Source: Zygnema circumcarinatum SAG 698-1b (lineage: Eukaryota; Plantae; Zygnematophyceae). From it: a stretch of DNA of 39,392 nucleotides. Shown here piece by piece: positions 2,418 to 33,211 of this stretch (position 1 is the first letter of the stretch; the number at the start of each line of letters is the position of its first letter). The stretch covers positions 1-39,392 of the forward strand of contig JBBHKD010000021.1 in the NCBI GenBank assembly GCA_037447605.1, written 5' to 3'. A program made the position numbers and the translations under genes. Below the pieces are notes generated by a model. It did no database searches and was not told the DNA's origin. It saw only the letters and a list, made by a program, of their open reading frames with translations.

Positions 2418-2434
2418 CGAACCGAGAGGGGGAA

Positions 2435-3255
2435 TGTAGTGTACAATAGGGGTATAGAACAACGTAGTACACTTTACGGTCCTTAGGTAGTGTCGGCGGT
2501 CCTTGGTAGATTCGGTCACTGTCTGAACAGTGCGCTAGAGCGCTGTTCTTAGTGGGAAGACGACAGGTTTAAATAGGACACGTGGAGGGCGGCGATAGGC
2601 CGCGCCACCAGAGGAGTCCGCTTAGTTTGATAAGTGTTCTGTAGACACGTGGCGCGCGACGATAGGTCGCGCGGCTATGAGTTAGCTTAGTACGGATTAT
2701 TGGAGGTGCGAAGGAGCGCGGAAGGTTCAGAGCGACGGAGGAGCTTTCGGAGGAGAGTTTCGGTACGGACACTCCCCTCCCCATGGCGGCCTCTCGAGCT
2801 GAGCTCCTGCGCGGTGCGGAGCGAACTTCAGGAGGCGCGGAGCGACCTTGACGACATGGAGGTGGCACGCGGTGGCACGCGGTGGAACGTTGAGGTGCTT
2901 CAGCGGCTAGTATTTAGGTTACTTAGTGCATAGTTCTAGTTACCCTTAGAACCTTGCATCTCGGCTCGTGGTGCTGAGTGTAGAGGCCTGCTGTATGGGC
3001 AGCAGTAGATAGGTGTGTAGGGCAGAGCATTAGGAATCGCCTGAGGGCTGAATTTCTGTGTGTAACCCTTTCCTATTTATTTTAAGGAGTTTTGAGCCAG
3101 TGGGGGCTTTCTCCTTTACTTCACTTCTCGGTGTCTTTTCTTTCAGCTTTTATTCTTTCCTTCCAGTGTGTGCATTGGGGGTGGGTGTGTTCGCTGAAAT
3201 ACAAGCATGTCTGAGAGTGCAGTGAATGAGAGAGACCAGGCTCTAGTTTCCAACA
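2435..3255 (+). repeat. 3' LTR of element A (821 bp)
   Basis: Follows PPT, TG..CA ends, TSD on right. Contains a GGTGGCACGC-like 10-mer x3 at 2861-2890 and the conserved hairpin at 3084-3116. Confidence 0.93.
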
Positions 3256-3979: not shown

Positions 3980-4378
3980 CCGTACGATGGGTTCGATTAG
4001 ATTGTCAAAGATGAATTTAATGAAAATGGGGAATAGTTACCGCGAGTTTGAAGCTGCCACGTCGCGCGTCCGGATTGGTTGTGCGTTTTGTTGGATCGAA
4101 TGAGCAGAAAATGGGGTATATCGTGTAACCATTCAGTCATTGCCACGTGTCGTTTAATACGTACAACAGCTTTCGATTTGAATGTTTAATGGGATTTACG
4201 GATTCGATTAGGTTGTGAACGATGAATTTAATGAAAATGGGGTATAGTTGCCGCGAGTCTGAAGTTGCCATGTTGCGCGTCCGGATTGGTTGTGCGTTTT
4301 GTTGGATCGAATGCGCAGAAAATGGGGTATATCGCGTAACCATTCAGTCATTGCCACGTGTCGTTTTCTATGTACGAC
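3980..4378. repeat. Tandem duplication, ~211-bp unit x2
   Basis: TTCGATTAG...GATGAATTTAATGAAAATGGGG...CATTCAGTCATTGCCACGTGTCGTTT occurs at 3992 and 4203. Confidence 0.9.
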
Positions 4379-4542
4379 AGAGGGCGGTTTGTATGTTTAC
4401 GGGACCTATTGTTGTAAATAGGGTATGTGTCGCAGCGTGTTACAATTTGTCACGTTGTGCATTCTTATTGGTTCAGCACTATGTCGCTTATCCAATCAGG
4501 TGTTGCCACGTAGCCCTAAAATGGGAAAAAATCCAAAAATAA

Positions 4543-4603: not shown

Positions 4604-5780
4604 AAAAAAAAAAATAATAATCAATCTAAATATTACAACATGTGGCCACATGTTGTATTAATTTAGTTTGATTATTTTTTATTTTTTTTTGTTAGTAAAA
4701 GTCACACACGCAATTACAGACAATTACAAACACTGTCACAGGATAAAAAATACAAACAAACAAACACACAAAAAGGCTGAAAAATCTAAAAGTCTCAGAA
4801 AGAGAAAAAAAGAAAAAAAAAACATAATCAATCTAAATATTACAACATGAGGCCTTATGTTGTATTAATTAGTTTGGTTCTATTTTTTTTTTTTTTTTGT
4901 AAAAATCACACACGCAATTACAGACAATTACAAACACTGTCACAGGAAAAAAAATACAAACAAAAAAACACACAAATAGGCTGAAAAATCGAAAAGTCTC
5001 AAAAAGAGAAAAAAAGAAAAAAAAAACATAATCAATCTAAATATTACAACATGAGGCCACATGTTGTATTAATTAGTTTGATTAAATTTTTTTTTTTTTT
5101 TTGTAAAAATCACACACGCAAATACAGCACCCACAAACACTGTCACAGGAAAAAAAATACAAACAAACAAACACACAAAAAGGCTGAAAAATCTAAAAGT
5201 CTCAGAAAGAGAAAAAAAGAAAAAAAAAACATAATCAATCTAAATATTACAACATGAGGCCCCATGTTGTATTAATTAGTTTGGTTCTATTTTTTTTTTT
5301 TTTTTGTAAAAGTCACACACGCAAATACAGCACCCACAAACACTGTCACAGGAAAAAAAATACAAACAAACAAACACAAAAACAGGCTGAAAAATCTAAA
5401 AGTCTCAGAAAGAGAAAAAAAGAAAAAAAAACATAATCAATCTAAATATTACAACATGAGGCCTCATGTTGTATTAATTAGTTTGATTCTATTTTTTTTT
5501 TTTTTTTGTAAAAATCACACACGCAAATACAGCACCCACAAACACTGTCACGGGAAAAAAAATACAAACAAAAAAACACACAAATAGGCTGAAAAATCGA
5601 AAAGTCTCAAAAAGAGAAAAAAAGAAAAAAAAAACATAATCAATCTAAATATTACAACATGAGGCCTTATGTTGTATTAATTAGTTTGATTAAATTTTTT
5701 TTTTTTTTTTGTAAAAATCACACACGCAAATACAGCACCCACAAACACTGTCACAGATAAAAAAAAAAAAAAAAAAAAGA
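4604..5780. repeat. AT-rich tandem repeat, ~204-bp unit, ~5.7 copies, each unit with an internal palindrome
   Basis: ATAATCAATCTAAATATTACAACATG recurs at ~4617, 4824, 5027, 5230, 5433, 5637. The array ends in an A-run. Confidence 0.95.
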
Positions 5781-5838: not shown

Positions 5839-6107
5839 TTCGAACATCGCTCTCTCCAGGACCGGGTCCTTCCGAAACTGTCCAGGGTTATTTGCTGTTC
5901 AGGACAAGAGTGTAAGCGTAAGGAAAAAACTTATTTACATCATGAGCACATTATTATATATTTTTATTTTTGGTAGTTTCCAAAACTTTCAAAACTCGAA
6001 ATTTCCAGATTTCCAGCATTTCAAAATGTCCAGCTTTTCCAAATTTCCAGCTTTTTCCAGCAAATCTTTATAGTCCAGAGGACTGTCTTGGGGACTGACG
6101 GACTTTT

Positions 6108-6109
6108 TG

Positions 6110-6141
<32 letters not shown>

Positions 6142-6270
6142 AGTGACTGACTGACTGACTGACTGACTGATTGACCGACAGACTGACAGACACGGACTGA
6201 ACTTCTGAGTGACTGACTGACAGACGGACAGACAGACTGGCCGACAGACTGACAGACTGACTGACTGACT
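6108..6270. repeat. (GACT)n / GACA / GACG tetranucleotide microsatellite, followed by a TCCTTCC-rich tract to ~6410
   Basis: Direct inspection. Confidence 0.9.
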
Positions 6271-6410: not shown

Positions 6411-6864
6411 CGCCATGGGTCCCCTACTGCCAGGAGGCAAGACCTTCTAAAGGCGGCAGACCTTCGAAAGACGGCAGAAGGTGACCGGGTCACCTGCTGC
6501 CGCTACTACTTAAGCTGCTCAGCTGCGCTGATTAGATTAACCTCATACTACACGCCAATGGGGGTGTGTAGCGAGCTGAGGCCGAGCCTGTAGTCAAGGG
6601 GAAACTGTGCTGCTAGTCTTGGGAATAGAAAGCGGGGTAGTGCAAGCTGCATTAAGCAGTCTGGGGCTGCTTGAATCTGTTGTACTCCACCTCCAAGGAA
6701 ATCAGAGTTTTATGCCCGGTGGGGCTTTCTCTATCTCAGCGTCTCTTGTCTCACATCTGTCTTGAGCTTTCCTTTCGCGAACAGCTGCTGCGAAGATGTC
6801 TACGACTGAAGAGCCGAGTGGAGGCGACTCTGTCAAAGGTGGTTCCACGATGGAATTACCAACA
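6411..6864 (+). repeat. 5' LTR of B (U3 truncated)
   Basis: Ends GGAATTACCAACA followed by AG-TGGTATCAGAGC. Homologous to 32777-33211. Confidence 0.92.
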
Positions 6865-8513
6865 AGTGGTATCAGAGCTGATGGAGACATTCGGCACACT
6901 ATTCCTGTCTTTAAAGGTACTGACTACAAGGACTGGCGGTGGCATATGATGACCCTCTTGCAGACCAAGAACCTGGTCAAGTACGTGAACGGGAGCATCA
7001 AACCACCGACTGTGGATTCGCCCATGACTGCCGACGAGCTATCAACATGGACGATGAAGGACGCGCAAGTGAGGCTTCTTATCGCCTCAAGCGTCTGAGG
7101 GAACCCTGCGAAGATGCTTCGGGAGCTCACTTCCGCCTACGATATGTGGCAGAAGCTCGCCAACATCTACGACGTCATTGATATTACTGTCAAATTCGAG
7201 CTCTACGATGAGCTGATGCAGATGAAGATGGCCCAAACCGAGGAGTTGACGAACTACGTGATTCGTTTCGACGAACTGATGGCAAAATTCGTAATCGCCA
7301 GGCAGCCTATCGTCAAAGATCATCAGATTGTGAGCTTCCTCAGAGGTTTGCCGATCCGGTTTGCACCAACCATCAACTCCCTAAAGACTTTGCTCGTTCG
7401 ATATCTGCTTACCCTTGAGGAGGTAATAATGCGAGTGAGAGCGGAGGAGAGCACGATCAAAGGATCGAAGAAGTCCGGATCCGAGGACGTGATGGCGATC
7501 GAGCAGAGGAGGCCTCAGAAGAAAAGTGGAGCGCCGGACAGACTTTGTACTTTCTGCAAACGCAAAGGTCACCTTGAAGCCGACTGCCGAACCAAGAAGG
7601 CTGCCCAGGGCAACGCACCGACCCCGAGCGCACCCAAGAAGGACGGCAAGAACAAAGGCAAGGAGATCATCTGCTACAAGTGCGAGCAGCCGAGACACAT
7701 GGCGCGGAACTGCACAGGAGATGTAGCCGCCCAGATGAGCACGAGTATATTGGCTAGTAACACCAAGCACGCACCTTTTGTAAATCAGATTTCTGTTAAT
7801 GAAATTGACTATTCTGATTACTTGCCGTGGCTCATAGATTCAGGTGCTTCAAAGCACATGTGTAGCGACAGGTCACTATTCTCTCACATGCAGACGTTGG
7901 ATGAGTCACGCGCGGTGACGTCAGCCACGGGAGACCAGATCGCCGTCACACAAGGAGTAGTCCAGCTGTCACCACGGGGTGAAGGAACAGCTTCCCAAAT
8001 CAGGATTGGTAGCGTATTGCACACCCCAACCCTTAGAAATAACTTCTTTTCCGTTAGTCAGATCTGCGGGAGTGGATACGAGGGGATTTTCAGGCAGAAT
8101 ACCTGCAAAATAGTGCATAGACAAACCAAGAAAATTTTGTGTCGAGGGACCCAGAGGGGAGGACTATATTACTTAGACTGAAGACCGGTAGAACCGGAAT
8201 TCGTCACATCTGCGCACGCTGAGAGTAGCAAGCGCAAAGAGGGAGCGTCGAAGCCCGCTTTTACAAGCGCGGCCCGCACCCGCAACTCTGTCCACGGTTC
8301 GAAAATCACCGAGCAGGGATTGACCGTAACAGCTCTGGGGAGCAATTGCGATGATGGCGAGACGAAAGTGTGCACTCCACGCAGTGCAACTAGCGGCCAT
8401 GGCTCTACCCGCGCGGACGTTGGGAGCAGCCATTTTCGACGAGCGAAGGACGTTCCGACGGGAACACGCAAAATCGAAACCACGAGCGTCACCGACAAAG
8501 TGAGTGACAAAAA
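6796..8513 (+). pseudogene. gag-pol: B gag (two CCHC knuckles) - protease - spacer; premature stops at 7096 and 8179
   Basis: CTFCKRKGHLEADC, CYKCEQPRHMARNC, WLIDSGASKHM, GLYYLD. The TGA codons align with K and W in paralog E. Confidence 0.93.
6867..6878 (+). promoter_or_regulatory. Primer binding site (tRNA-iMet) of B
   Basis: TGGTATCAGAGC 2 nt after the LTR end. Equivalent PBS at 13637-13648(-), 19466-19477, 21915-21926, 30303-30314(-), 34765-34776(-), 36563-36574(-). Confidence 0.95.
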
Positions 8514-9194
8514 TGTGAGAGGGGCAGAGGGATGAGAAGCAAATTCACCTTCCACCCTTTCTCCCTCTTCACTGTCCATGGAAACTTCCCTCCTGGTGCC
8601 CGCAGCACTCTCACTCATTTTTCACTCACGTGCATACACAACACACGAGAGGCGGAATAGAAAAACGTAGGAGAAAGCTCCCAGCCTAAAACTCCTTTAT
8701 GATGACAAGCTTTCCAACTTAAGCCCCCATAAGCCTAGTCAAGCTTTCACCACATGATCACTTCACCTTCACGTGAGGCAGCTCTCCACACACGGAGACT
8801 CCTCACAAAGGTCCACCTCCTATTGCCAAAGCCATGCCTTCAAACTGCCATAGCCTTGCAATGCGTATCAAGAAGGTTTCTAACTTACACACCCACTCTC
8901 ACTATATAGTATGGGGCTGTGACGTGACCATGTCACGTCACACGCGCCGGGACCATGCATGCAACAACCTTATTCAAACAACCTAAATAAACTACTTCGT
9001 GTCTTGCTATGCATAGTACACCCAGCCTGGCAACGTACCAACACCACCGCCCTAACCCAGATGGCCATGTACTCTACCGCCGGGCTGAACACCCCGCCGT
9101 CCTTCATAAGGACTATCCTCCGTACGCAAAGTAGGCTCCGCCGACTCCACCGACTNNNNNNNNNNCTAATCTGAACTAACTATGTACACTAACA
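8514..9194 (-). repeat. 3' LTR of C (collapsed by N-gap 9156-9165)
   Basis: Matches 13651-14586 on either side of the gap. Confidence 0.93.
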
Positions 9195-12200: not shown

Positions 12201-13755
12201 CAAGTCCAAGCCTCGGACCAACCCCTTCTGAGCTAACTCCCGCATGGCTCGAAAACTCACATGCCCAAGCCTCCTATGCCACTTCTGCACCTCATCTTGG
12301 GTCATAAGCAAAACTGACTCTCCTTCTTCTTCAGGCTTACTCCACTGTAAGACGTACAGGCCCTCTCTCCGGTGCCCCTGAAATAAGACATTCCCAGTTT
12401 TCTTATGTCTAGCCACGCAATTCTGCTTATCAAAAGTGACTGAGTAACCCCTGTCGCACACTTGTCCCACAGACACAAAGTTGTGCTGCAACCCAGGGGT
12501 ATAAAGCACGTTACCAATCATGGTAGCTGCCCCTTCACTCTCTCCTCCTAAGACGATCCTCACGTCGCCTCCGCTGGTCACCTTCACTTCCTCACCAGTC
12601 GCTGACTGAACTGAACGAGGGGCCTGGAGCGATCTCATCTCGTAGAACAACCCCCAGTCTGCACACATGTGCGTCGACGCCCCTGAATCAATGAGCCACG
12701 GCTTCTCGGGTCCTTCACACATTCTCCCCACAAACTCCACATGCTCCTTCTCAGCAAACATCAAGTTTGTATCAGTAGCAGCACTTCTGCAATCAATGCT
12801 CTTGTGACCCTTCTTCTTGCACTTGAAGCAAGCGCCTGTGAACTCCTTCTTGCTCGACTTCGTCTTGGCGTCCCCTCCCTTCACTTGGGCCGCCTTGCCG
12901 GAACGGCACTCGTTGGAGTAGTGACCTGGCTTCCCACAAGTGAAGCATGTCCCCTTGGGACGATCTCCGCCACCTCCTCCTTTCGCCTTGCCTTTCCCAA
13001 AAGGCTTCCCCTTCATCGCCAACACGCTCTCACTCGCATCGGATGCGTCATGAAGAGCGTCCTCTTCACGAATCCGCTTCTTCACCTGCTCAAGGTCAAA
13101 GAAAGTGGTAAGTAATTCGAAGAAGGGCAGCGCATGTCTTGATCAGCGGCTGGCAAGTAACCAAACTTTAAGAGTGATCTTGTGGTCGACTCAAGACCGC
13201 CTTGCATCACCACTGAAGCGGCGCACATGAAACGTCAAAGCGCCCCATGTAGTCAGTCAGCTTCTCATCCAAGCTCATCTTCATCTTCCCGAGCTCCGTG
13301 GTACAGGTGCACCACTGTGACGCTGTCCTTCGCATCGTACATGTCCTCCAAACACTTCCACATCTCGTGTGACGTGCTGAGGTCGTAGAGCATGTGTGAA
13401 GGCGTCCCCTTCACACTCATTGCAATCTGAGTGATGGCCTTGTTGTCACGGGCCTTCCACTTTGCAAGCTCCTCCACGGATGTAGCGGCGGCGCCTTCAC
13501 CTTCCCAGTCACATGACCAAGAAGTCCCTTCCCTTCAAGTATGGGAGTCAGCCGCCACTTCCATCCCTTGTAGTCTGTCCCATCAAATGCAGGGACATTA
13601 AACTTCACACTAGCCCCGGTTTCCTCTTCACCATGAGCTCTGATACCACTTGTGAGAGGGGCAGAGGGATGAGAAGCAAATTCACCTTCCACCCTTTCTC
13701 CCTCTTCACTGTCCATGGAAACTTCCCTCCTGGTGCCCGCAGCACTCTCACTCAT
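9213..13755 (-). pseudogene. gag-pol: C gag-pol polyprotein (Gag, 2 CCHC, PR, IN, RT, RH); indels at 13085-13500 and a stop at 9570
   Basis: 1171-aa ORF with DSGAS, WHRRLGH, HTDLCGP, RSDNGGEF, NGAAER, YVDD, DADWGGD, plus RNase H ORF 9213-9563. PR-IN-RT-RH order is Copia. Confidence 0.96.
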
Positions 13756-14586
13756 TTTTCACTCACGTGCATACACAACACACGAGAGGCGGAATAGAAA
13801 AACGTAGGAGAAAGCTCCCAGCCTAAAACTCCTTTATGATGACAAGCTTTCCAACTTAAGCCCCCATAAGCCTAGTCAAGCTTTCACCACATGATCACTT
13901 CACCTTCACGTGAGGCAGCTCTCCACACACGGAGACTCCTCACAAAGGTCCACCTCCTGTTGCCAAAGCCATGCCTTCAAACTGCCATAGCCTTGCAATG
14001 CGTATCAAGAAGGTTTCTAACTTACACACCCACTCTCACTATATAGTATGGGGTTGTGACGTGACCATGTCACGTCACACGCGCCGGGACCATGCATGCA
14101 ACAACCTTATTCAAACAACCTAAATAAACTACTTCGTGTCTTGCTATGCATAGTACACCCAGCCTGGCAACGTACCAACACCACCGCTCTAACCCAGATG
14201 GCCATGTACTCTACCGCCGAGCTGAACTTCCCGCCGTCACCCACAAGGACTATCTTCCGTACGCAAAGTAGGCTCCGCCGACTCCACTGACTTCGCCGCC
14301 TTCCGCCGCCGCATCATTCCTCGATTCCGTACTCCAGGACCGATTCCTCGGAGCGGTACTGAATGTCGGACTCCTGGCCGTACTGTCCGTACTGTCGACT
14401 GTCCGTACAGTCTGTACTGTCCGTACAGTCTCTACCGGCAGCTTGGTCGGTCTCGCCTCCGCGCGCACGCTCTTGAGTCAACCATGAAGTAAGTCCGCCC
14501 CCATACATCTCACACCTAGAAGCACACCCCTAGGAACTAAGCGCCAACACAAACATGCTAATCTGAACTAACTATGTACACTAACA
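13651..14586 (-). repeat. 5' LTR of C (936 bp)
   Basis: TG..CA termini, adjacent PBS, TATA-like TATATAG near 14040. Confidence 0.95.
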
Positions 14587-16134: not shown

Positions 16135-17053
16135 TGTTGAAGCAGGGGACTGTTCGCTGCCTCCGGCAACACCTCGTGTGTCGCCCTCCACAGGAACACG
16201 TGTTCCCACTGAAGATGACATTTCCACTTTATCACTCTCAAGGCTCTATCTCAATTCAATCATTGCCCATAACTCACAGAAAGATTATCAGAGATAAGCA
16301 CAGCGGATAACAACTGAGAGAAGTGTAGGAGAAAGCTCACGGCTCTAAAACTCCTTATATGAAATGTCCACCCACATGAAGTTCTCCCACCAAAATGCTA
16401 TTTCTCTTACTCAGTACCTCACGACACAAGTAAGGCAGCCCGGCAGCACGAGCAGGCACATAATAAGTAACTAGTGTGGTTAACTTCTACATAGTAAAAC
16501 TAATCACTATATACTTAACATGGCGCTGTGACGTGACACATATGTCACGTCACGGCCGCCATTGCCAGTCCTTGCAAACCGGCCGAGCGGCGCACTCAGA
16601 CTCAGTGCGCTACGCCATCATTCTCGTAAACCTATGGCAGCGCCGACCTACAATCGGCTCCTCCGTACAGTTCCGTCATTTTGCCAGCCTTAGTCAGCGA
16701 TCTCCGCGTGCCGACTTTCGTCCCTACATTCGAATCTGCAGACCCACTCAGCGAGTGGTGCGCGTGTCGCGTCATGATTTGCCGTCGACTTTGCCACCTG
16801 ACATTTTCTCCGTCGCATCCGCACCGCAAACCAGCGCTCCGCGATCCGCGATCCGCGATCCGCGTTTGCGCCTCGACCAATCAGCGCCGCTCGTCAATAC
16901 TCCGCGCACTCGCGGCGCACTCGAAGAGTTTAAGGCGCTGACGTCATCCTAAATTAGTCTAGAAGCACAACTACAAGCGTAACCTAACTGAGTACCACAA
17001 CAAGTTAGTGCGTGTTCAATGCAATGTCTAACTATGATACACTAACACTAACA
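16135..17053 (-). repeat. 3' LTR of D (919 bp)
   Basis: Homologous to 30317-31236. Confidence 0.95.
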
Positions 17054-17069: not shown

Positions 17070-18598
17070 TCAGTTCCTCATGGGCCCCAGCCCTATGAGC
17101 CTACTGTTCACTAGCAATGTCTCCCCACTGACCCCTTTGGTCAACATGTCCGCAGCTTGCTCTTTTGTACATACGAACTTCACCACTATCATCCCCTCCA
17201 CTACCAATTCCCTCACGTAATGGTATTGCACCCTAATGTGCTTGGTCCTCTTGTGGAATACAGGGTTTCCCATCAAGGTTATGGACGACTGGTTGTCCGT
17301 AAACAAAGTCACCGGAGTTTGTGGTCTCTTACATTCATCAAAGAAGTACTGGAACCACACTCCCTCCTTTGNNNNNNNNNNGTTGATCGTGATGTGTCCA
17401 CGTCACCTCCCCAATCTGAGTCGGTGTATCCGATCACTCTAATTGGCCCCCTCTCATACCTGAGGCCGTAATCCAGGGTTCCCCGTACATACCTGAAGAT
17501 TATCTTCACGGCTTCCCAATGTTCAGGACCCGGATTCTCCATGAACCGACTTGCTGAGCTCACGGCTTTGGCCAAGTCCGGTCGCGTACCAATCATTAGG
17601 TACATGAGACTTCCGATAGCAGATCTGTACGGCACTCCGTACATCCGTTGTACCTCCGCATCCGTTGCGGGCGCCATCTCCTTTGACAGTCGCGCCCCGA
17701 TCTCCATGGGGCTGGCACACGATCTGCAATCTTCCATATGGAATCTCGCAAGTACGTCTGCGGCGTACTTCTTTTGACACAGGAAGAGGCTTCTGTCTTG
17801 CCCCCTCTTCAGTTGTATCCCTAACAGATATTGCGGTTCCCCTAGATCCGACATCTTGAAGTTCGCTTGCAGCAGCTCCTTCAAATCATTGATTCTCTCC
17901 AACGAGAGACTCACAATAATGAGGTCGTCAACGTAGATCCCAACGTACATGAGATCCTCGTCCTCCCCTTGTCGGTAAACGGAATGATCCGTTTCGAGTC
18001 GCGCGAATCCGTTCCTCCTGAGAAGATCGCCTATCTTCTCATACCAGATCCTGGGCGCCTGTTTCAGTCTGTACAGACTTTTTACTAGGCGACAAACCAG
18101 ATCCTCCTTGCCCAGGACAAGTTTCCCTTCGGGCTGTACCATGTAGATCTCCTTTGCGAGATCTCCGTACAGAAACGCGGTCTTGATGTCGAGTTGATGT
18201 ACGTGCATCCCCCTCGGCCGCTGCAATCGAAATTAGGGCGCGGAGCGAATTAAATTTTACCACGGGTGCAAAAGTCTCCCTGTAGTCAATTCCGTACGCC
18301 TGGCTGAAGCCTTTCGCCACCAGACGCGCCTTGTACCGATCGACGCTCCCGTCCGCCTTCCGCTTCACCTTGATCACCCACTTGCATCCAATGGCCCTTC
18401 TTCCCCTCGGCAGCTCCTCAAGTCGCCATGTCCCGTTCTCTAGCAAGCTGTCCCACTCACTGTCAATCGCTGCTCGCCACTTTTCGCCATCGACCCCGTC
18501 GTGCGCCTCCTCAAAGGTTTGCGGTTCGGTGATCATGAAGCAGTGCGCTTCTCCCGCGAGTTCAGCCGAGTCAGTGGGCACTCTCTCCTGCACAAGGT
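17070..18598 (-). pseudogene. pol: D RT-RNase H (gap at 17372-17381); second copy of RT at 19957-21047
   Basis: ORFs 18039-18593, 17309-18226, 17070-17360 and 19939-21042 with YVDD, GTRPDLA, KHIRVQYH. Confidence 0.93.
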
Positions 18599-19463
18599 TG
18601 TTGTTCGGCGCTAGAGACCGTACAACTATTGGACATAGTCTCTAGGGCATGAAGGACTTAGGCGCGAACGCCAAGCGACAAGGATGGTCGCGCGGGCGCG
18701 GACGCGGAGTTAACTTCTTGGTACCGTGACGTGACAAACCGAACATATTTCAGGCGTACGGCCGACGGGACGCGCGACGCGACTAAGGGACGCGGAGCGC
18801 GAAATGTGAACGTGGGCGCGACGTGACAAGTGTTCGCGGGCGCAACTCGGAACTGAAACTGAGAAGTTTCAGTCAGGTGCGAAACGGAATTTGCGCACAC
18901 CGCGTTTTGGTACGCGTTCTGGGAACTTGTACGGACGCGACGGCGAAGCGGCAAACGGCGCTAAGTGACTACCCACTAAAAGGTGACCGGAAGCCGGCTA
19001 TGGCGGGTGAGAGACCACTAAGCAAGCGGTCCAGCCCTTGCAAGACGGCAACCGTGACAGGGTCACGGCTTGCAGAGCTACTTAAGCGGCTCCATGGGGA
19101 GCTGTTGGTACCCTGAATCGACCCTGAACCTTTATGGGGAGGTTCACGCCTCATACTACCGCATAGGGGAGCAGTGCATTCCTGGAGTGTAGGTAGCGAG
19201 CTGAGGAAGGGTCGAGTAGTCAGTGGCAGCCGTATCAAAACGCTTCCGCAAAGCATAGGATAGAACCAGCGTCATGAGTAGAGACTGCCTGCACCTGTTG
19301 TATCTTTCCTTTGTATAAATAAGAGGTTTTTCGGCCGGTGGGCTTTTCTCCTACATTCTGTCACACAGTTCCAGCTTGACGATCGACAGTCAGCATGGCC
19401 GCGACAGATGCGAGTGAAGACACGACGAGAGGAGGTTTGGTGTATGACACATCATCCTCAACA
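18599..19463 (+). repeat. Duplicate copy of E 5' LTR
   Basis: Apparently identical to 21048-21912; lies within the 2.45-kb duplication. Confidence 0.9.
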
Positions 19464-21047
19464 AGTGGTATCAGAGCCTCTGATGGTGATATACGGCATA
19501 CCATCCCTATCTTTAAGGGAACTGACTACAAGGATTGGCGGTGGCAGATGACAACCTTACTCCAGAGCAAGGGGCTGCTGAAGTACGTCAACGGGACGAT
19601 CACACCACCTGCCAACTTCACCACCCTGTCTCCGGACGAGCTGGAGCAAACGACGTGGTGGAAGAAGGACGTTCAAGTGAGGATGCTTATATCCTCAAGC
19701 GTCAAGGGGAATCCGGCAAAGATGCTGCGCGAGCTTCAGACTGCCCAAGAGATGTGGCAGAAGCTCTCAGCCATCTACGACACCATCAACACGAACGTGA
19801 AGTTCGAGCTCTACGACGAATTAGTGCAATTGAAGATGGGTCAGACCGAGGAACTGACATCCTACGTCATCAGGTTCAGCGATCTGATGGACAAGTTCGT
19901 CATTGTCGCCAAGGCAATCGACAACGACCAGCAGATCGTCAGCTTCNNNNNNNNNNCACGGCTTCCCAATGTTCAGGTCCCGGATTCTCCATGAACCGAC
20001 TTGCTGAGCTCACGGCTTTGGCCAAGTCCGGTCGCGTACCAATCATTAGGTACATGAGACTTCCGATAGCAGATTTGTACAGCACTCCGTACATCCGTTG
20101 TACCTCCGCATCTGTTGCGGGCGCCATCTCCTTTGACAGTCGCGCCCCGATCTCCATGGGGCTGGCACACGATCTGCAATCTTCCATATGGAATCTCGCA
20201 AGTACGTCTGCGGCGTACTTCTTTTGACACAGGAAGAGGCTTCTGTCTTGCCCCCTCTTCAGTTGTATCCCTAACAGATATTGCGGTTCCCCTAGATCCG
20301 ACATCTTGAAGTTCGCTTGCAGCAGCTCCTTCAAATCATTGATTCTCTCCAACGAGAGACTCACAATAATGAGGTCGTCAACGTAGATCCCAACGTACAT
20401 GAGATCCTCGTCCTCCCCTTGTCGGTAAACGGAATGATCCGTTTCGAGTCGCGCGAATCCGTTCCTCCTGAGAAGATCGCCTATCTTCTCATACCAGATC
20501 CTGGGCGCCTGTTTCAGTCTGTACAGACTTTTTACTAGGCGACAAACCAGATCCTCCTTGCCCAGGACAAGTTTCCCTTCGGGCTGTACCATGTAGATCT
20601 CCTTTGCGAGATCTCCGTACAGAAACGCGGTCTTGATGTCGAGTTGATGTACGTGCATCCCCTCGGCCGCTGCAATCGAAATTAGGGCGCGGAGCGAATT
20701 AAATTTTACCACGGGTGCAAAAGTCTCCCTGTAGTCAATTCCGTACGCCTGGCTGAAGCCTTTCGCCACCAGACGCGCCTTGTACCGATCGACGCTCCCG
20801 TCCGCCTTCCGCTTCACCTTGATCACCCACTTGCATCCAATGGCCCTTCTTCCCCTCGGCAGCTCCTCAAGTCGCCATGTCCCGTTCTCTAGCAAGCTGT
20901 CCCACTCACTGTCAATCGCTGCTCGCCACTTTTCGCCATCGACCCCGTCGTGCGCCTCCTCAAAGGTTTGCGGTTCGGTGATCATGAAGCAGTGCGCTTC
21001 TCCCGCGAGTTCAGCCGAGTCAGTGGGCACTCTCTCCTGCACAAGGT

Positions 21048-21912
21048 TGTTGTTCGGCGCTAGAGACCGTACAACTATTGGACATAGTCTCTAGGGCATG
21101 AAGGACTTAGGCGCGAACGCCAAGCGACAAGGATGGTCGCGCGGGCGCGGACGCGGAGTTAACTTCTTGGTACCGTGACGTGACAAACCGAACATATTTC
21201 AGGCGTACGGCCGACGGGACGCGCGACGCGACTAAGGGACGCGGAGCGCGAAATGTGAACGTGGGCGCGACGTGACAAGTGTTCGCGGGCGCAACTCGGA
21301 ACTGAAACTGAGAAGTTTCAGTCAGGTGCGAAACGGAATTTGCGCACACCGCGTTTTGGTACGCGTTCTGGGAACTTGTACGGACGCGACGGCGAAGCGG
21401 CAAACGGCGCTAAGTGACTACCCACTAAAAGGTGACCGGAAGCCGGCTATGGCGGGTGAGAGACCACTAAGCAAGCGGTCCAGCCCTTGCAAGACGGCAA
21501 CCGTGACAGGGTCACGGCTTGCAGAGCTACTTAAGCGGCTCCATGGGGAGCTGTTGGTACCCTGAATCGACCCTGAACCTTTATGGGGAGGTTCACGCCT
21601 CATACTACCGCATAGGGGAGCAGTGCATTCCTGGAGTGTAGGTAGCGAGCTGAGGAAGGGTCGAGTAGTCAGTGGCAGCCGTATCAAAACGCTTCCGCAA
21701 AGCATAGGATAGAACCAGCGTCATGAGTAGAGACTGCCTGCACCTGTTGTATCTTTCCTTTGTATAAATAAGAGGTTTTTCGGCCGGTGGGCTTTTCTCC
21801 TACATTCTGTCACACAGTTCCAGCTTGACGATCGACAGTCAGCATGGCCGCGACAGATGCGAGTGAAGACACGACGAGAGGAGGTTTGGTGTATGACACA
21901 TCATCCTCAACA
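21048..21912 (+). repeat. 5' LTR of E
   Basis: TGTTG...CAACA, followed by PBS. Confidence 0.95.
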
Positions 21913-24900
21913 AGTGGTATCAGAGCCTCTGATGGTGATATACGGCATACCATCCCTATCTTTAAGGGAACTGACTACAAGGATTGGCGGTGGCAGATGA
22001 CAACCTTACTCCAGAGCAAGGGGCTGCTGAAGTACGTCAACGGGACGATCACACCACCTGCCAACTTCACCACCCTGTCTCCGGACGAGCTGGAGCAAAC
22101 GACGTGGTGGAAGAAGGACGTTCAAGTGAGGATGCTTATATCCTCAAGCGTCAAGGGGAATCCGGCAAAGATGCTGCGCGAGCTTCAGACTGCCCAAGAG
22201 ATGTGGCAGAAGCTCTCAGCCATCTACGACACCATCAACACGAACGTGAAGTTCGAGCTCTACGACGAATTAGTGCAATTGAAGATGGGTCAGACCGAGG
22301 AACTGACATCCTACGTCATCAGGTTCAGCGATCTGATGGACAAGTTCGTCATTGTCGCCAAGGCAATCGACAACGACCAGCAGATCGTCAGCTTCGTGAG
22401 AGGTCTGCCAGCCCGCTTTGCACCAACGATCAATTCGCTGAAGACCCTGCTCGTGAAAAACTCGCTCACCCTCGAGGAGGTTCAGATGCGGGTGAGAGCA
22501 GAAGAGAGCGCAATGAAGGGATCGAAGAAGTCGAGTCCCGAGGACGTCATGGTGGTCGAACAACGGAACGCCCAGAAGAAAGGTGACGCGCCGAGAACAT
22601 TCTGCAACTACTGCAAGCGAAAGGGACATCTCGAAGCCAATTGTCGCACTAAGAAGGCAGCTCAGGGCGGAGGACGCCCCAACAACGCTCCTCAAGGCGA
22701 CAAGAAGAAAGGCAAGGAAATGCTATGCTTTCAGTGTCAGAATCCGGGACACCTAGCCCGCAACTGTCCAGGGTCAGTAGCGGCTCAAGTAGAGGCAAGT
22801 CATATGGCTAGTGATGCCAAGCCCGCTGAATATGTAAATCAGATCTTTATGAATAAAGCTGATGTTTCACCGTGGCTTATAGACTCAGGTGCCTCAAAAC
22901 ATATGTGTGGTGATAAGTCTCTCTTCACAGAGATGACGTTGCTCGACCAGTCACGATTTGTGACATCAACAACCGGAGACGAGGTCTCCGTCACCCACAG
23001 TGGAGTCGTCCAGCTGTCACCCATAGGGGTAGGGACACCTTCCCAATTCATAATCGGTAGTGTACTACATACCCCAACCCTTAAGAATAACTTCTTTTCG
23101 GTTAGTCAGATCTGCAAGGGCGGATACGAGGGTGTCTTCAGGGAGGAGTCCTGCAAGATAGTGCACAGAAAAACGAAAAAGGTTCTATGTAGAGGGACTC
23201 AGAGGGACGGACTTTACTATCTAGACTGGTTTTCTTCTAGCAAGGAGTTCGTCTCATCCGTGCGTACTGGGAGTACACGCGAAGGATCAACGCGAGCCTC
23301 TCACGGCTCGCTCAACGATCAGGAGCCTGCCCGCGCCACGGCCAGCGCGACGAGCAAAGGATCCGCGCGCAAGGGAGCGCGTGAAGGTGGGGAGACGAAT
23401 CACGCTAGGGGACGCCCAGAAAGCGAGATACGCGTCCACGAGCCTGCTCACAACGGAAGGAGCAGCGACAGAGGAGTCGCGCCCACCTCGGGGAGGGAGC
23501 GCGAAGGCGGGGCCGCGCGCGCTAACGACAGCGCGCTCAAGGACCGTAGGGTGGCGAACCCGAAAAGTGGAGTTCGCGACGGTACGGAATCGTACGGAAC
23601 CCATGTCGAGGTACAAAGTTCCAAATCGACTCGCCGTGACATGACAAGTCGAAATCATCTAAAGAGTACAGAGACCGGCTTCATTGAAGGAAAGGAATCC
23701 GTACAAGAGGCTTCAGACGCGGCGCATCTGTGGCACCGCCGACTTGGTCATTTGTCGTATAGCGGCCTGAAGGCCCTTGCGACCCAGAACCTCGTTCGAG
23801 GACTTCCCGTTGCGAAGATCTCGACACCAGAAGCTGTCTGCCCCGACTGCGCGGCGGGCAAGATACACCGTTACCCTTTCAAGAGCTTTGGAGCGGACAA
23901 GCATCGCGCATCCAAACGGCTGGAGTTGGTGCAAAGCGACCTGTGCGGACCGATCACTCCCACGTCAAAGGGCGGTGCAAGGTACTTCATCACCTTCCTT
24001 GATGATTACTCACGGAAGATATGGGTTGTACTGCTGAAGTACAAGAGTGAGGCGTTTGAGACCTTTCGGACCTGGCAGAAAGAGGTAGAAAGGCAAACCG
24101 GAGAGAAGATTCAAAGGATCCGAACGGACAAAGGAGGAGAATACAGGTCCCTCCAATTCTCTGAGTACCTTCAGTCATTAGGGATAAGACACGAGTTCAC
24201 CGCGCCCTACAGCCCTTAGAGCAACGGAGTTGCTGAGAGAGTGAACTGCACCCTAGGCGATATGGCACGGGCCATGCTGAGTGAGTCCCCCTTTCCATTA
24301 GACTTTTGGGGAGAGGCAATCCTCAGTGCAGCTTACATCCGGAATAGATGCCCCTCCTGTGCCCTGAAAGATGAGCGTAGAGTACCTGAGGAGTTGTGGA
24401 GTGGCAATAAGCCTACGGTTCAGCATCTTAGAGTCTGGGGCTCAAAGTGCTGGATAGCGATTCCAAAGACCAAGCTGGAGACGAAGTTTAGCCCACGAGG
24501 AGAGTTTGGATACTTCCTCGGCTACAACACCGATAGCTTGACGTATCGGGTATGGAATCCCTCCACTCAGAAGGTCATGAGTAGTCGTGACCTTACAGTC
24601 GATGAGAACACCAAGGTGGAGCAGAAGGTGCGGACGAGCGTGGAGCAGCTTCCCGACATTGAGTTCTTACCAGTGCGGGACGTCATAGGAAGTGAGATGC
24701 TACCACCCCCTACCGAGGCCCCCTTGTCCCCAGCGACAATGGAGTCGCAAGAAGAATTCCCTCAGCGCCCGGAGGCGCTGCAACGACCCTCCCCGACACC
24801 TCAAGAGGAGCTGCACGGAGGAGAAGAGCCCGAAGAAGACAACTTTGAGCAAGAATCCACGGAGGAAGAAGCGATTGAGGCACCGGCACCGCGTCCTTGG

Positions 24901-26691: not shown

Positions 26692-26706
26692 TCCCAAGAG
26701 GGGGAT

Positions 26707-27571
26707 TGTTGTGCGGCGCTAGAGACCGTACAACTATTGGACATAGTCTCTAGGGCATGAAGGACTTAGGCGCGAACGCCAAGCGACAAGGATGGTCGCG
26801 CGGGCGCGGACGCGGAGTTAACTTCTTGGTACCGTGACGTGACAAACCGAACATATTTCAGGCGTACGGCCGACGGGACGCGCGACGCGACTAAGGGACG
26901 CGGAGCGCGAAATGTGAACGTGGGCGCGACGTGACAAGTGTTTGCGGGCGCAACTCGGAACTGAAACTGAGAAGTTTCAGTCAGGCGCGAAACGGAATTT
27001 GCGCACACCGCGTTTTGGTACGCGTTCTGGGAACTTGTACGGACGCGACGGCGAAGCGGCAAACGGCGCTAAGTGACTACCCACTAAAAGGTGACCGGAA
27101 GCCGGCTATGGCGGGTGAGAGACCACTAAGCAAGCGGTCCAGCCCTTGCAAGATGGCAACCGTGATAGGGTCACGGCTTGCAGAGCTACTTAAGCGGCTC
27201 CATGGGGAGCTGTTGGTACCCTGAATCGACCCTGAACCTTTATGGGGAGGTTCACGCCTCATACTACCGCATAGGGGAGCAGTGCATTCCCGGAGTGTAG
27301 GTAGCGAGCTGAGGAAGGGTCGAGTAGTCAGTGGCAGCCGTATCAAAACGCTTCCGCGGAGCATAGGATAGAACCAGCGTCAGGAGTAGAGACTGCCTGC
27401 ACCTGTTGTATCTTTCCTTTGTATAAATAAGAGGTTTTTCGGCCGGTGGGCTTTTCTCCTACATTCTGTCACACAGTTCCAGCTTGACGATCGACAGTCA
27501 GCATGGCCGCGACAGATGCGAGTGAAGACACGACGAGAGGAGGTTCGGTGTATGACACATCATCCTCAACA
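26707..27571 (+). repeat. 3' LTR of E
   Basis: About 10 substitutions versus the 5' LTR by hand count. Confidence 0.95.
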
Positions 27572-30403
27572 AAGGTTAGTCTGCGAGGGCCTGTATTGAT
27601 CAGGCCTCCTCACCACGCGGGTGCTCCTCCGCGGTCCTTGCGTTCTCCCACTCCTTGAGTTGAAGAAAATCCCCGGGACAAACCCGGGAGGCATGCTTGC
27701 CAACATCGCCTCTCTTTCAGCCGTCTCCAAGTCCTTAGACTCCTGTCCATGTAGCGGCACAGTTTCGGCCGAGTTCTCCTCGTCTGACAGGTGAGTGTGT
27801 AGTGGAGCCGTTTCCGTCAAAATCTGCGGCTCTCCCGCTTGCGGCACTTCGGGTTCAGCTCCCACGGCCGCTTCGACGCTTGGTAACGTTTCCGGTTCAG
27901 CTCCTTTGCTCTCGGGCGTGCTGACCTCCTCCAAAACAAGGACCTGGATGGCATCAACGCCTTCTCCCCTGGTCTCCACGTCTTCGTACACAATCTCCAA
28001 CTCTGTCTTTGGGGGTCGGGTCTCACCTAGTCGTGTCGCCGCCCCTCTCTCATCCACCGTGATGTCCCTCGAACTCTGAACCTCGTTCACCCGAGGGTTC
28101 CACATCCTGTAAGTGTGGCTGTCGGTGTTGTAGCCGAGGAAATACCCCTCCACGGCTCGAGGATCGAACTTCCTCGTTTTCTTCGCCTTCAGCACTGCCG
28201 TCCAGCAGCGCGCTTCGAAAGCCTTCAGGTGGGACACCGTGGGCTTCCTCCCACTCCACACCTCTTCAGGAACCTGTTCCTTAAGAACAGAGGACGGGCA
28301 TCTATTTCTAAGGTAGGTGGCAGTCATCACTGCCTCTCCCCAAAACGATGCTGGAAAGGGGAAATCAATCAACATGGTCCTCGCCATGTCCCCCAGCGTC
28401 TTATTTACCCTCTCAGCAGCTCCATTACTTTGAGGGGAGTAAGGAGCAGAAAATTCATGCCTTATTCCGCGAGTCCTCAAGTACTCGCCGAATTCCTTCG
28501 ACTTGAATTCCCCTCCGTTGTCCGAGCGCAGAGTCTTCAGCTTGGATCCGCTCCTTCGCTCCATCTGTACGTGCCACTCTTTGAAGGCTCCGAAAGCCTC
28601 AGACTTGTTCTTGAGAATTTTCACCCAGATTTTCCTCGAAAAATCATTGAGAAATGTGATGAAATATCGGGCTCCACCAGTCGTTGCCGGTGTCACGGGA
28701 CCGCAAAGGTCGGTGTGAACCAGACCCAGCTTCTCTTGCACATGGAACGTGTCCTCTCCACTCCTCGCGAATGGTTTTCTGTGCGCCTTCCCCTCTATGC
28801 ACTCATTGCAAAACCCGAGCTCCTTCTCAACTATATCTACATCTAACCCGCGGACCAGCCCCCTTGCGGCAAGCTGTTGCAGTCCCCTATGGTTCAGATG
28901 ACCAAGTCTACGATGCCAAAGATTTACTGCACTTTCAGATATTGCCATTACCCCTTCATCTTCCTCTCTTCTATAATGAAGGTAATATAGGCCTCCCTTT
29001 TCATACCCCTCAAACAGCCGCTTTCCGGTCTCCAAATGAGTAGCCACGCATGACTTCTCCCTAAAGGTAATCTCATACCCCTTCTTACACACTTGGCTAA
29101 CAGACATAAAATTCTGTTTCAGCTCAAGGGTGTGTAGAACATCACCGATGCACAGACGCTCTTCTCTCTCTTCTTCGTAGATGATGGAGCCGTCTCTGAG
29201 TCGCATCTTGACCACTCCTCCCTTCGTGACTGTCACTCCCTCTCCGGTTGCCGAGTGAACAGATCGGGTCCTCTCCAACGTATCCAACGTGGAGAACATC
29301 TGCTTGTCGCCACACATGTGCATGGAAGCGCCAGAGTCAATCAGCCATGGCCGCTTCAGATCCAGAACCTGGATCTTCCCAACAAAGTCAGAATTTTCTG
29401 TGAGCATGAGGTTCGTCTCCACCGCCACTTTGCAATCTGCAGTCTTGTGGCCTCTCTTCTTGCACTTGAAGCAGATTCCCTTGAACCCCTTCTTGCCGGA
29501 TGACGAAGCTCCTCCTCCCCGATCTGGGGTGCTCTTGTTCTTGAAGCAGTTCGCCGAGTAGTGGCCAGTCTTGCCACACGTGTAACACGCTCCCGCGGGG
29601 CGTTCACCTCGGTCTGTCTTCAACGTGCCTCCTTTTTGGTCTTGACGCGAGTGCAGCGCCAGCACCCTCTCTTCGGTGCCGCCAACGTCTTGGACTGTAT
29701 CCTCCTCCTCAATCCTTCGCTTCACTTGCTCAAGGGTCATTATGGAGTTCGTTAGTACTGTCCTAAGAGCCGCAACTGCCACATCAAACCGACCAGGCAG
29801 TCCTCCTAGAAACTTGCTGATCTTATGGTCCCCCTCTAACAGTTTCTGCAAGGCTATGAACCTCTCCATTAGAGTGTCAAATCTGACCATATATTCCCCT
29901 AGTTTCTCATCTGAGGACATCTTCATCTTTCCTAGCTGCGTGTAAAGGCTGACAATTGTCACGTTATCCTTTACATCATACATCTCTTCTAAGCACCTCC
30001 ACATAGCATGTGAAGTCTTGAGATCGTACAGCATAGACGAGGGACTTCCCCTCACACTCATGACGATCTGGGTAAGGGCCTTGTTATCCTTAGCCATCCA
30101 TCTGACGAGCGCCGTGTCGTACTCCGACTGCTGCTCCGCCGTGGCTCCCTCCGGCAGCACCGGTGCCTTGATGGTGCCGTCAACGTACCCGAGTAACCCC
30201 TTGCCCACGAGCAAGGGGACCAGCCGCCATCTCCACCCCTTGTAGTCCGAACCATCGAACGCTGGGATGCTGAACTTCACGTGGTCCTCCTCGCCACCAT
30301 AGGCTCTGATACCACTTGTTGAAGCAGGGGACTGTTCGCTGCCTCCGCCAACACCTCGTGTGTCGCCCTCCACGGGAACACGTGTTCCCACTGAAGATGA
30401 CAT
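27572..30403 (-). pseudogene. gag-pol: D gag-PR-integrase, open up to the E insertion
   Basis: ATG at 30403 inside the LTR; CYTCGKTGHYSANC, CFKCKKRGHKTADC, DSGAS, WHRRLGH, RSDNGGEF. Confidence 0.95.
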
Positions 30404-31236
30404 TTCCACTTTATCACTCTCAAGGCTCTATCTCAATTCAATCATCGCCCATAACTCATAGAAAGAATATCAGAGATAAGCACAGCGGATAACAACTGAG
30501 AGAAGTGTAGGAGAAAGCTCACGGCTCTAAAACTCCTTATATTAAATGTCCACCCACATGAAGTTCTCCCACCAAAATGCTAGTTCTCTTACTCACTACC
30601 TCACGACACAAGTAAGGCAGCCCAGCAGCACGAGCAGGCACAGAATAAGAAACTAGTGTGGTTAACTTCTACATAGTAAAACTAATCACTATATACTTAA
30701 CATGGCGCTGTGACGTGACATGCTGTGACGTGACACACATGTCACGTCACGGCCGCCATTGCCAGTCCTTGCAAACCGGCCGAGCGGCGCACTGAGACGT
30801 AGTGCGCTACGTCATCATTCTCGTAAACCTACGGCGGCGCCGACCTACAATCGGCTCCTTCGTACAGTTCTGTCGTTTCACTAGCCTCAGTCAGCGATCT
30901 CCGCGCGCCGACTTCCGTCCGTACATTCGAATCCGCGGACCCACTCAGCGAGTGGTGCGCGTGTCGCGTCGTGATTTGCCGCCGACTTGGCCGCCTGACA
31001 TTTTCTCCGTCGCATCCGCGCCGCAAACCAGCGCTCCGCGATCCGCGTTTGCGCCTAGACCAATCAGCGCCGCTCGTCATTACTCCGCGCACTCGCGGCG
31101 CACTCGAAGAGTTTAAGGCGCTGACGTCATCCTAAATTAGTCTAGAAGCACAACTACTAGCGTAACCTAACAAAGTACCACAACAAGTTAGTGCGTGTTC
31201 AATACAATGTCTATCTATGATACACTAACACTAACA
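30317..31236 (-). repeat. 5' LTR of D (920 bp)
   Basis: TG..CA, PBS adjacent, 15-bp duplication of the palindrome arm at ~30708-30722. Confidence 0.95.
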
Positions 31237-32610: not shown

Positions 32611-33211
32611 CGAATGTGCACGGACGCGAACGGGGGAGGGCGCGCGGAGTCGCTAAGTTGAGGAACTGTACGGACGCGCGGATCCACTCTCCAACCGGCA
32701 AAATAGCGACTTTGGAGAGGAAGACGGCAGCCAGAAAAGCTCCACGGGCTAAGAGAGGGGACCATCGCCAACGAAGCGCCATGGGTCCCCTACTGCCAGG
32801 AGGCAGGCCTTTGAAAGACGGCAGAAGGTGACTGGGTCACCTGCTGCCGCTACAACTTAAGCTGCTCAGCTGCGCTGATTAGATTAACCTCATACTGCAC
32901 GCCAATGGGGGTGTGTAGCGAGCTGAGGCCGAGCCTGTAGTCAAGGGGAAACTGTGTTGCTAGTCTTGGGAATAGAAAGCGGGGTAGTGCAAGCTGCATT
33001 AAGCAGTATGGGGCTGCGTGAATCTGTTGTACTCCACCTCCAAGGAAATCAGAGTTTTATGCCCGGTGGGGCTTTCTCTATCTCTCCGTCTCTTGTCTCA
33101 CATCTGTCTTGAGCTTTCCTTTCGCGAACAGCTGCTGCGAAGATGTCTACGACTGAAGAGCCGAGTGGAGGCGACTCTATCGAAGGTGGTTCCACGATGG
33201 AATTACCAACA
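32611..33211 (+). repeat. 3' LTR of B (distal part)
   Basis: 32777-33211 matches 6411-6864; ends TACCAACA, followed by G RT sequence rather than a PBS. Confidence 0.9.

Follow-up and report, generated by a model that had tools for sequence, protein, structure and literature searches.

The stretch of DNA analysed here (the window) comprises 39,392 nucleotides (nt) of contig JBBHKD010000021.1 from the streptophyte alga Zygnema circumcarinatum SAG 698-1b (assembly GCA_037447605.1), and holds a nest of Ty1/Copia retrotransposons whose long terminal repeats (LTRs) share a motif of 28-33 nt, the subject of this report. Pfam domains occur in Copia order on both strands (Retrotran_gag_2, zf-CCHC, Pol_BBD, gag_pre-integrs, rve, SH3_retrovirus, RVT_2). 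Self-comparison of the window defined five LTR sets, A to E, together with a subfamily, D3, that is 72% identical to D overall. The LTRs start with TGTTG or TGTTAG after a polypurine tract (PPT; AAGAGGGGGA) and end in CAACA or CACA, and in the 5' copies the LTR end is followed directly by AG and TGGTATCAGAGC, the primer-binding site (PBS) for the initiator methionine tRNA (tRNA-iMet). With Gag, protease, integrase and reverse transcriptase (RT) in this order, TG..CA LTRs, a PPT and a tRNA-iMet PBS, the host elements are Ty1/Copia elements. In all families the gag ATG lies within the LTR, and its frame continues across the LTR end and the PBS.

A conserved motif in the LTRs

A covariance model was built from the five family versions of the motif, and a scan of the window with this model returned 12 sites at 36.9-48.2 bits (E 1e-7 to 7e-11), the next-best match scoring 11 bits (coordinates in Table 1). 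All 12 copies lie within LTRs and in sense orientation relative to gag, which bears out the proposal of an earlier note on this DNA, made by inspection of the letters, that the motif is an orientation-specific LTR element upstream of the gag ATG. Every string quoted in that note for its 11 intervals (11/11) is present at the place and on the strand given there, and a twelfth copy, in an extra LTR of family E, is added here. The motif ends 43-106 nt before the gag ATG and 111-192 nt before the LTR end, and starts 158-212 nt after an upstream TATATAG; the corresponding earlier estimates were about 40-105 nt to the ATG and about 150-235 nt from a TATA-like box.

Between families, the Gag-integrase (Gag-Int) proteins are 36-70% identical, with B and E the nearest pair and D and E the farthest. 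In 7 of the 10 LTR family pairs no local alignment scores higher than that of the motif, which in four pairs exceeded all 100 shuffles (A-C, 34 vs 27; A-D, 46 vs 28; C-D, 47 vs 27; D-E, 33 vs 27). When D is compared with D3, the motif is the best-kept 30-nt window of the LTR (0.97 vs 0.72 overall). Because it tops the local alignments at such protein divergence, the motif is, judging from the alignments of its five independent sequences, a real cis element of the LTR under selection. The families had been described as otherwise unalignable, which overstates the case: the LTRs also have in common their TGT..ACA termini, a 60-nt block between B and E, and a GTGAC..GTCAC palindrome accompanied by TATATAG (C, D, D3) or by the TTAAG-type box CTACTTAAGC (B, E).

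Within the motif, the most invariant columns are the TTTT that is unpaired in the predicted fold, seen by the earlier note as a U-rich bulge kept in all families, and the 3' run TTTCTC. The run CTTTCTCC(T) is invariant apart from one base in B and one added T in E, while the purines of the 5' half vary without compensation. This pattern leads us to favour conservation of the primary sequence.

Further variants come from public sequencing data at contig level. The segment 27220-33215 was compared with four runs, none of them recorded as RNA, and matched one (X1). Starting exactly at the upstream TATATAG (32219) and continuing as far as the LTR end (32610), one X1 contig shows 92% identity with the D3 LTR, and before 32219 it is unlike D3, which points to the part of the LTR from the upstream TATATAG onward behaving as a conserved module to which a different U3 has been joined. 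An E-like X1 variant is missing 106 nt (27286-27391), the gap ending 38 nt before the motif, and retains the sequence that runs from CTGCACCTGTTGTAT across AT box and motif.

Predicted RNA folding

In RNAalifold and in single-sequence folds, all five families adopt the same stem, U-rich bulge, stem and G-rich loop, and it was to this structure that the earlier note ascribed the conservation. Folding energies range from -7.2 to -11.9 kcal/mol, with z-scores of -1.81 to +0.35 against dinucleotide shuffles, and the RNAalifold covariation term for the five sequences is +0.81, a penalty. Across these sequences 79.3% of cells are paired, compared with 76.2% in column shuffles (83/500 as high). Two pairs are changed on both sides where 1.0 is expected (130/500 shuffles as high): pair 15-24, C-G to G-C in E, and pair 16-23, C-G to U-A in C. 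The inner stem thus varies while staying paired, as had been noted, but to an extent within the range of the shuffles. The compensatory change noted for the outer stem is a paired one-base deletion in B, one G and one C being lost together; E has an uncompensated A-C, and the D3-like X1 copy carries G>A at 32400 with its partner unchanged. In D an extra 5' base pairs with the otherwise bulged U, and positions that are not Watson-Crick are mostly G-U on the sense strand.

Context changes the prediction. Once 150 nt of downstream leader are added, the hairpin is predicted with a pair probability of about 0 in A and C, and E no longer forms its outer stem, so that three of the six LTR versions lose the fold; in an RNA ending at the motif, the hairpin has a probability of 0.7-0.99 in A, B, D and D3. 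Neither stability above that given by composition nor robustness in the leader context was found, and thermodynamic support for the hairpin, looked for in shuffles and context folds, was absent. As far as these models go, the view that the motif is conserved for its RNA structure is not supported. A search of the window against Rfam 15 gave nothing at the gathering score and nothing on the motif even at E<10, in keeping with the earlier caution that its likeness to the trans-activation response element (TAR) of human immunodeficiency virus type 1 (HIV-1) is analogy and not homology.

Two RNA-based candidates were rejected. A loop palindrome of the dimer-initiation (kissing) type is present only in B and E. 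Complementarity of the primer-activation type to tRNA came down to the 6-mer AGAGCC in common with the PBS region, which we take as chance; the window is without a tRNA gene.

Promoter-like sequences around the motif

An AT-rich run (the AT box) adjoins the motif in five of the six LTR versions. The statement that the motif usually follows such a run therefore holds for these five and fails for B, which has only GGAAATC there. Because this adjacency is strict while the distances to the ATG, the LTR end and TATATAG vary, we treat AT box and motif as one module. The AT box is a candidate downstream TATA box and/or near-upstream element of a poly(A) signal. To judge by its letters, it is as good a TATA box as the upstream TATATAG, and in D and D3 it reads TATAAGG, presumably the same TATA context as in the cauliflower mosaic virus 35S promoter.

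Farther upstream, families B to E all keep the GTGAC..GTCAC palindrome, which in C and D is doubled and has ACGT cores. Within the next 10-20 nt comes TATATAG (C, D, D3) or, in its place, CTACTTAAGC (B, E). This bZIP-like palindrome and the box behind it are likely to be the enhancer and upstream promoter of the LTR.

Downstream of the AT box, a pyrimidine-A (Y-A) step is conserved 33 nt from the first T of the box in C, D and D3 and 39 nt in E. The 3' half of the motif, CTTTCTCCT, occupies positions -10 to -1 before this step and consists of C and T only; T-A follows the pyrimidine run directly in every version except A, where two more T intervene. The first 40 nt past the motif are 68-80% pyrimidine in A, B, C, D and D3 and 55% in E, against an upstream mean of about 47%. 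From motif to gag ATG, no upstream ATG (uATG) occurs in B and E or, by eye, in A, and the 200 nt before the motif contain 1-4 ATGs. B and E have no AATAAA-like word from the motif to the LTR end.

Since the host is a streptophyte alga, the rules of plant promoters can be taken as a yardstick. For Arabidopsis and rice, the position at which TATAAA is most frequent is -35, and the interval from the TATA box to the transcription start site (TSS) usually contains a pyrimidine (Y) patch that is direction-sensitive; 77% of TSSs follow a pyrimidine-purine (Y-R) rule, CA and TA being the commonest (PMC1832190). Matched by eye to these published positions, the LTR versions have a putative TATA box at about -50 to -20, except for B, which has no box, and all have what appear to be a pyrimidine patch and a Y-R step at -1/+1. 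Other candidates were set aside: TCP site II, the GCC box and the TCT initiator match in single families only, and a 5'-untranslated-region intron (GTGAGT upstream, a pyrimidine tract and CAG after the motif) is inconsistent across families, C having no AG, and would be expected to have left spliced copies in the genome.

Relatives outside the genome

Scans with the motif pattern gave 15 matches in IMG/VR and 39 in JGI metagenomes, all without the inner stem and without a PBS within 400 nt. We regard these matches as chance; one inspected closely (L017) lies inside a 212-amino-acid open reading frame (ORF) on the opposite strand. No close protein kin were found, the best Gag-Int matches being 25-44% identical and the first 260 Gag residues having none.

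Among 120 distant polyproteins, five carry near their N-terminus GIRA, the peptide encoded by the PBS. The contigs of four (P0032, P0063, P0093, P0098) have the gag ATG inside the LTR and an in-frame PBS, and a covariance-model scan of their LTRs found the motif absent. The polyproteins of these distant environmental Copia elements (L055, L056, L057/L058, L059/L060) are about 37% identical. By these sequences, a gag ATG inside the LTR is a widespread design and not peculiar to this genome. The motif itself, with no homologue outside this genome in the metagenome scans or in the LTRs of distant kin, appears within the accessible data to belong to one Copia clade of this genome.

A candidate downstream core promoter

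We suggest that AT box, motif and pyrimidine-rich stretch may be viewed as one module, the marker of a transcription boundary within the LTR, which the host RNA polymerase II machinery would read chiefly as DNA. With some reserve, and at less than even confidence, we favour reading this module as a downstream core promoter that possibly doubles as a 3'-end signal. The AT box would act as a downstream TATA box, the motif would fill the spacer between TATA and start, its invariant 3' half would be a plant-type pyrimidine patch, and transcription would start at the conserved Y-A step just past the motif (CCT-A-C). The resulting mRNA would have a CT-rich leader of 40-105 nt before the LTR-internal gag ATG. 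The upstream TATATAG could serve as a second promoter, as in the barley element BARE, whose replicated and translated RNAs come from different boxes. In the 3' LTR, or in RNA from the upstream promoter, box and U-rich motif would probably share in 3'-end formation, since the TATA region of plant Copia LTRs has been proposed to serve as a poly(A) signal too, and the small hairpin could bring the A-rich signal nearer to the place of cleavage. We count in favour of a core promoter the switch to pyrimidines right after the motif in five of six versions and the contrast between a uATG-free leader and the ATGs upstream.

Several points weigh against this proposal. Family B has no TATA-like box beside the motif, the distance from AT box to Y-A step in A is 37-44 nt, and the match to promoter elements was a judgement by eye without a null model. 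The upstream TATATAG of C, D and D3 appears to match the plant TATA consensus at least as well as the AT box and, given this consensus and its place just after the bZIP-like palindrome, could be the sole promoter. The identity of the D3-like X1 contig begins exactly at that upstream box, with a different U3 before it, and the X1 contigs pass from LTR ends into unrelated flanks, so that they look like DNA copies. A plain core promoter would also leave unexplained the conserved 5' half (AGGAGTTTT), the GC-rich centre, the G-U bias of the sense strand and the two compensatory pairs.

A further version of the downstream-promoter proposal, which we consider improbable, gives the single AT box both tasks, downstream TATA box and poly(A) signal. 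Two spacing rules would then have to be reconciled, about 33 nt from TATA to start and <30 nt from signal to cleavage, and a hairpin folding in RNA only could do so. Near-upstream elements of plant poly(A) sites lie 10-30 nt before the cleavage site. The hairpin would thus have a reason to exist, because a fold of about 30 nt would bring the A-rich box within 10-30 nt of the Y-A step.

Alternatively, the motif may form a hairpin of the sense-strand RNA, within the 5' leader (R or U5) of a genomic RNA started at the upstream TATATAG or TTAAG-type promoter, and may function in strand transfer, in translation, or in packaging or dimerisation (the Gag zinc knuckle being presented with a G-rich loop of GGUG type). 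The folding models leave this possible but doubtful. It would fit the CCHC zinc knuckle that the elements encode, the promoter-like palindrome and TATATAG lying 158-212 nt upstream, the stem, U-bulge and stem shape common to all five families, the inner-stem pairs changed on both sides in E and C, the paired loss in B, the extra pairing base in D and the G-U bias on the sense strand. It fits poorly with a stability not above that of dinucleotide shuffles, an unfavourable covariation term, pairing and compensatory counts within the shuffle range, the uncompensated outer-stem changes in E and the X1 variant, and a bulge and loop conserved as strongly as the stems. The fold is moreover predicted to vanish in A and C, and to lose its outer stem in E, once the leader is attached; loop palindromes for kissing dimers are confined to B and E; and the distant kin with the same gag-in-LTR design are without the motif. 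Placement in R/U5, as first proposed, depends on the upstream TATATAG being the sole promoter, and as a TATA box the AT run beside the motif would be just as good. Because the fold is unsupported and the AT box equally good, conservation through the primary sequence, as a polypyrimidine tract or DNA site, is a live explanation and the one we favour. Where a hairpin is invoked at all, a role at a 3' end or in nascent RNA would fit better than one in the leader, since it is predicted well only at the end of an RNA.

A signal at the R/U5 border for poly(A) addition or termination only, one that has no part in promotion, would make the AT run a near-upstream element, the TTGTA-type words of B, E and A far-upstream elements, and the U-rich motif with its Y-A step the cleavage element, the hairpin tuning spacing or the use of the 5' copy. 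AT run, U-rich flanks and Y-A step do resemble plant poly(A) sites (PMC3601003). Each LTR needs a 3'-end signal downstream of its promoter, B and E offer no AATAAA-like word after the motif, and the hairpin is best predicted where the RNA ends at the motif. This explanation nonetheless seems unlikely to us: AT box and Y-A step are 33-39 nt apart, beyond the usual 10-30 nt unless the hairpin compacts the interval, B has no clear A-rich box, and the gag ATG would come to lie in U5 behind a 250-300-nt leader with 1-4 uATGs. Least probable of all, in our estimation, is a palindromic DNA site for an unrelated host- or element-encoded factor (a dimeric transcription factor, or a chromatin or silencing target), or recent common descent. 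The motif is an imperfect inverted repeat, AGGAG...CTCCT, with invariant half-sites, and conserved palindromes are reported for Sirevirus Copia LTRs (PMC2829016, PMC4728375). Its halves are asymmetric, however, with the TTTT bulge on one side only, and all copies face the same way relative to gag. As for descent, families at 36-70% protein identity are too diverged for a neutral identity of about 82% over 35 nt, and the rest of the LTR does not align.

LTRs evolve fast, and a block kept at this protein divergence would mark a step indispensable to the elements. If the block is a start/stop module, it would aid the annotation of U3, R and U5 in algal Copia elements, help to predict which LTRs are promoter-competent, including solo LTRs that may drive host genes, and give a handle on whether the strategy of two promoters and two RNA pools is ancient. 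To our knowledge that strategy is known only from barley BARE. Were the reading with two boxes true, a BARE-like split of replicated and translated RNA pools would exist in a streptophyte alga and predate land plants. If the motif acts as an RNA hairpin, it would join a very small set of candidate structures for packaging or 3'-end formation that have been defined in Copia elements other than those of yeast.

Feature coordinates and neighbouring sequences

Table 1. Positions of the LTRs, the motif and associated features in the window (strand + or -)
Feature	Set	Position	Strand	Remark
LTR	A	about 2433-3255	+	3' LTR; RT of the element at 611-2417
LTR	B	6411-6864	+	5' LTR
LTR	B	32777-33213	+	second copy
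LTR	C	8514-9155	-	3' LTR
LTR	C	13651-14292	-	5' LTR
LTR	C	36577-37182	-	third copy, 90% like C
LTR	D	16135-17053	-	3' LTR, PPT before it
LTR	D	30317-31236	-	5' LTR
LTR	D3	end at 32610	+	subfamily of D
LTR	E	18598-19464	+	extra
LTR	E	21046-21912	+	5' LTR
LTR	E	26706-27572	+	3' LTR, PPT before it
Motif	A	3084-3116	+	48.2 bits; 3' LTR
Motif	B	6704-6732	+	5' LTR
Motif	B	33051-33079	+	second LTR copy
Motif	C	8669-8696	-	3' LTR
Motif	C	13806-13833	-	5' LTR
Motif	C	36732-36759	-	third copy
Motif	D	16327-16355	-	3' LTR
Motif	D	30509-30537	-	5' LTR
Motif	D3	32399-32427	+	identical to the motif of D
Motif	E	19322-19352	+	extra copy, absent from earlier list
Motif	E	21771-21801	+	5' LTR
Motif	E	27430-27460	+	3' LTR
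AT box	A	3074-3084	+	TATTTATTTTAAGG
AT box, degenerate	B	6697-6703	+	
AT box	C	13834-13841	-	CATAAAGG
AT box	D	30538-30544	-	TATAAGG
AT box	D3	32391-32398	+	TATAAGG
AT box	E	21763-21770	+	TATAAATA
Upstream TATATAG	C	14039-14045, 36959-36965	-	
Upstream TATATAG	D	16507-16513, 30689-30695	-	
Upstream TATATAG	D3	32219-32225	+	
GTGAC..GTCAC palindrome		6481-6493, 14056-14078, 16528-16553, 21503-21515, 30725-30750, 32185-32205, 36976-36998		
Leader, motif to gag ATG	E	21802-21843	+	
gag ATG	C	13755	-	
gag ATG	D	30403	-	
gag ATG	E	21844	+	
PBS	C	13637-13648, 36563-36574	-	
PBS	D	30303-30314	-	
PBS	E	21915-21926	+	

The stretches from the LTR-internal gag ATG onward (21844-21929; 13637-13755, minus strand; 30303-30403, minus strand; 6796-6878) include the PBS-encoded peptide ..SGIRA... 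A run of N at about 9156-9165 is an assembly gap in the 5' part of the C-family 3' LTR, and because this gap cuts the LTR, the C LTR length of 642 bp is a minimum. The third E copy of the motif is owed to a direct duplication of 2.44 kb at 99.8% identity (17507-19946 vs 19957-22395), which covers part of a minus-strand RT, an E LTR and the start of E gag, and represents, unless it is an assembly artefact, a tandem or nested duplicate.

Two further LTR sequences are without the motif. At 34740-35300 (minus strand) lies another LTR element with the same PBS (34765-34776, minus strand) and LTR ends of CTACA+T; its first ORF (34156-34794) has no Pfam match, and it could be of a different lineage or non-autonomous. 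The other is a D-like LTR fragment at 33840-34400 (plus strand), located after a PPT, which matches D until just before the upstream TATATAG and is unrelated beyond that point, hence the absence of the motif. Repeat tracts lie between the Copia elements at 4606-5778, 3992-4380 and 6093-6270: an AT-rich satellite with a 203-bp unit, all of whose 5.7 copies contain an internal palindrome and long A/T runs; 1.8 copies of a 211-bp repeat; and a (GACT)n tract. GC content falls to 0.32 there.

Comparison with known systems

The motif is like HIV-1 TAR in its order of stem, pyrimidine bulge, stem and G-rich loop, and family C has a run like CUGGGAGCU..CUC that we take to be common to the apex of TAR. 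HIV-1 TAR differs in beginning at transcript position +1 and in acting via Tat and P-TEFb. The motif ends just before the start predicted from the AT box and lies 158-212 nt past the upstream TATATAG, so that neither candidate promoter would place it at +1; relative to the candidate start sites it would be either upstream or >120 nt downstream. Among the long ORFs scanned (at least 200 amino acids), none is Tat-like, only Gag, protease-barrel, integrase and RT domains being found. The resemblance to TAR is one of shape only.

A functional parallel may be drawn with human T-cell leukaemia virus type 1 (HTLV-1), in which, as Ahmed et al. reportedly described in 1991, the Rex-responsive stem-loop lies between poly(A) signal and cleavage site and brings both together. 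In a similar way, a fold of the motif would let one AT box act as TATA box and poly(A) signal. The HTLV-1 structure is about 250 nt long and binds Rex, unlike the fold here, which is about 30 nt, weak and predicted.

Among Copia elements, Sirevirus LTRs are similar in that short motifs and palindromes are kept across diverged families near the TATA box, and differ in clade, sequence and position, the Sirevirus motifs being reported upstream of the TATA box (Bousios et al. 2010, PMC2829016; 2016, PMC4728375). Analysis of plant Pseudoviridae LTRs by hidden Markov models showed strong conservation of the TATA box and none of AATAAA, together with a very short R and a poly(A) site that lies near the TATA box among T-rich sequence (PMC3601003), and the TATA motif has been proposed to double as the poly(A) signal (Benachenhou et al. 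2013, PMC3601003). The LTRs of this window are like the block described there for plant Ty1/Copia elements (Tnt1, Sire, Retrofit) in their late TATA-type box near a putative 3'-end site with T-rich flanks, and in their TGTT..AACA termini and tRNA-iMet PBS. They are unlike them in the 28-33-nt imperfect palindrome after the box, conserved letter by letter across families, in the second TATATAG about 160-210 nt upstream, and in the gag ATG inside the LTR; that study describes no such palindromic spacer (PMC3601003).

In barley BARE, which has two TATA boxes, the RNA from the upstream box contains R and is packaged (Chang et al. 2013, PMC3735527), while the downstream box gives an RNA that has a cap and a poly(A) tail, is translated, and begins at a point too far downstream for R to be included (PMC3735527). 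The LTRs described here likewise appear to combine two TATA boxes, the upstream TATATAG and the AT box at the motif. For BARE the two RNA pools were established by RNA ligase-mediated rapid amplification of cDNA ends and analysis of virus-like particles, whereas here they are suggested by boxes and their contexts, and families B and E are without the upstream TATATAG.

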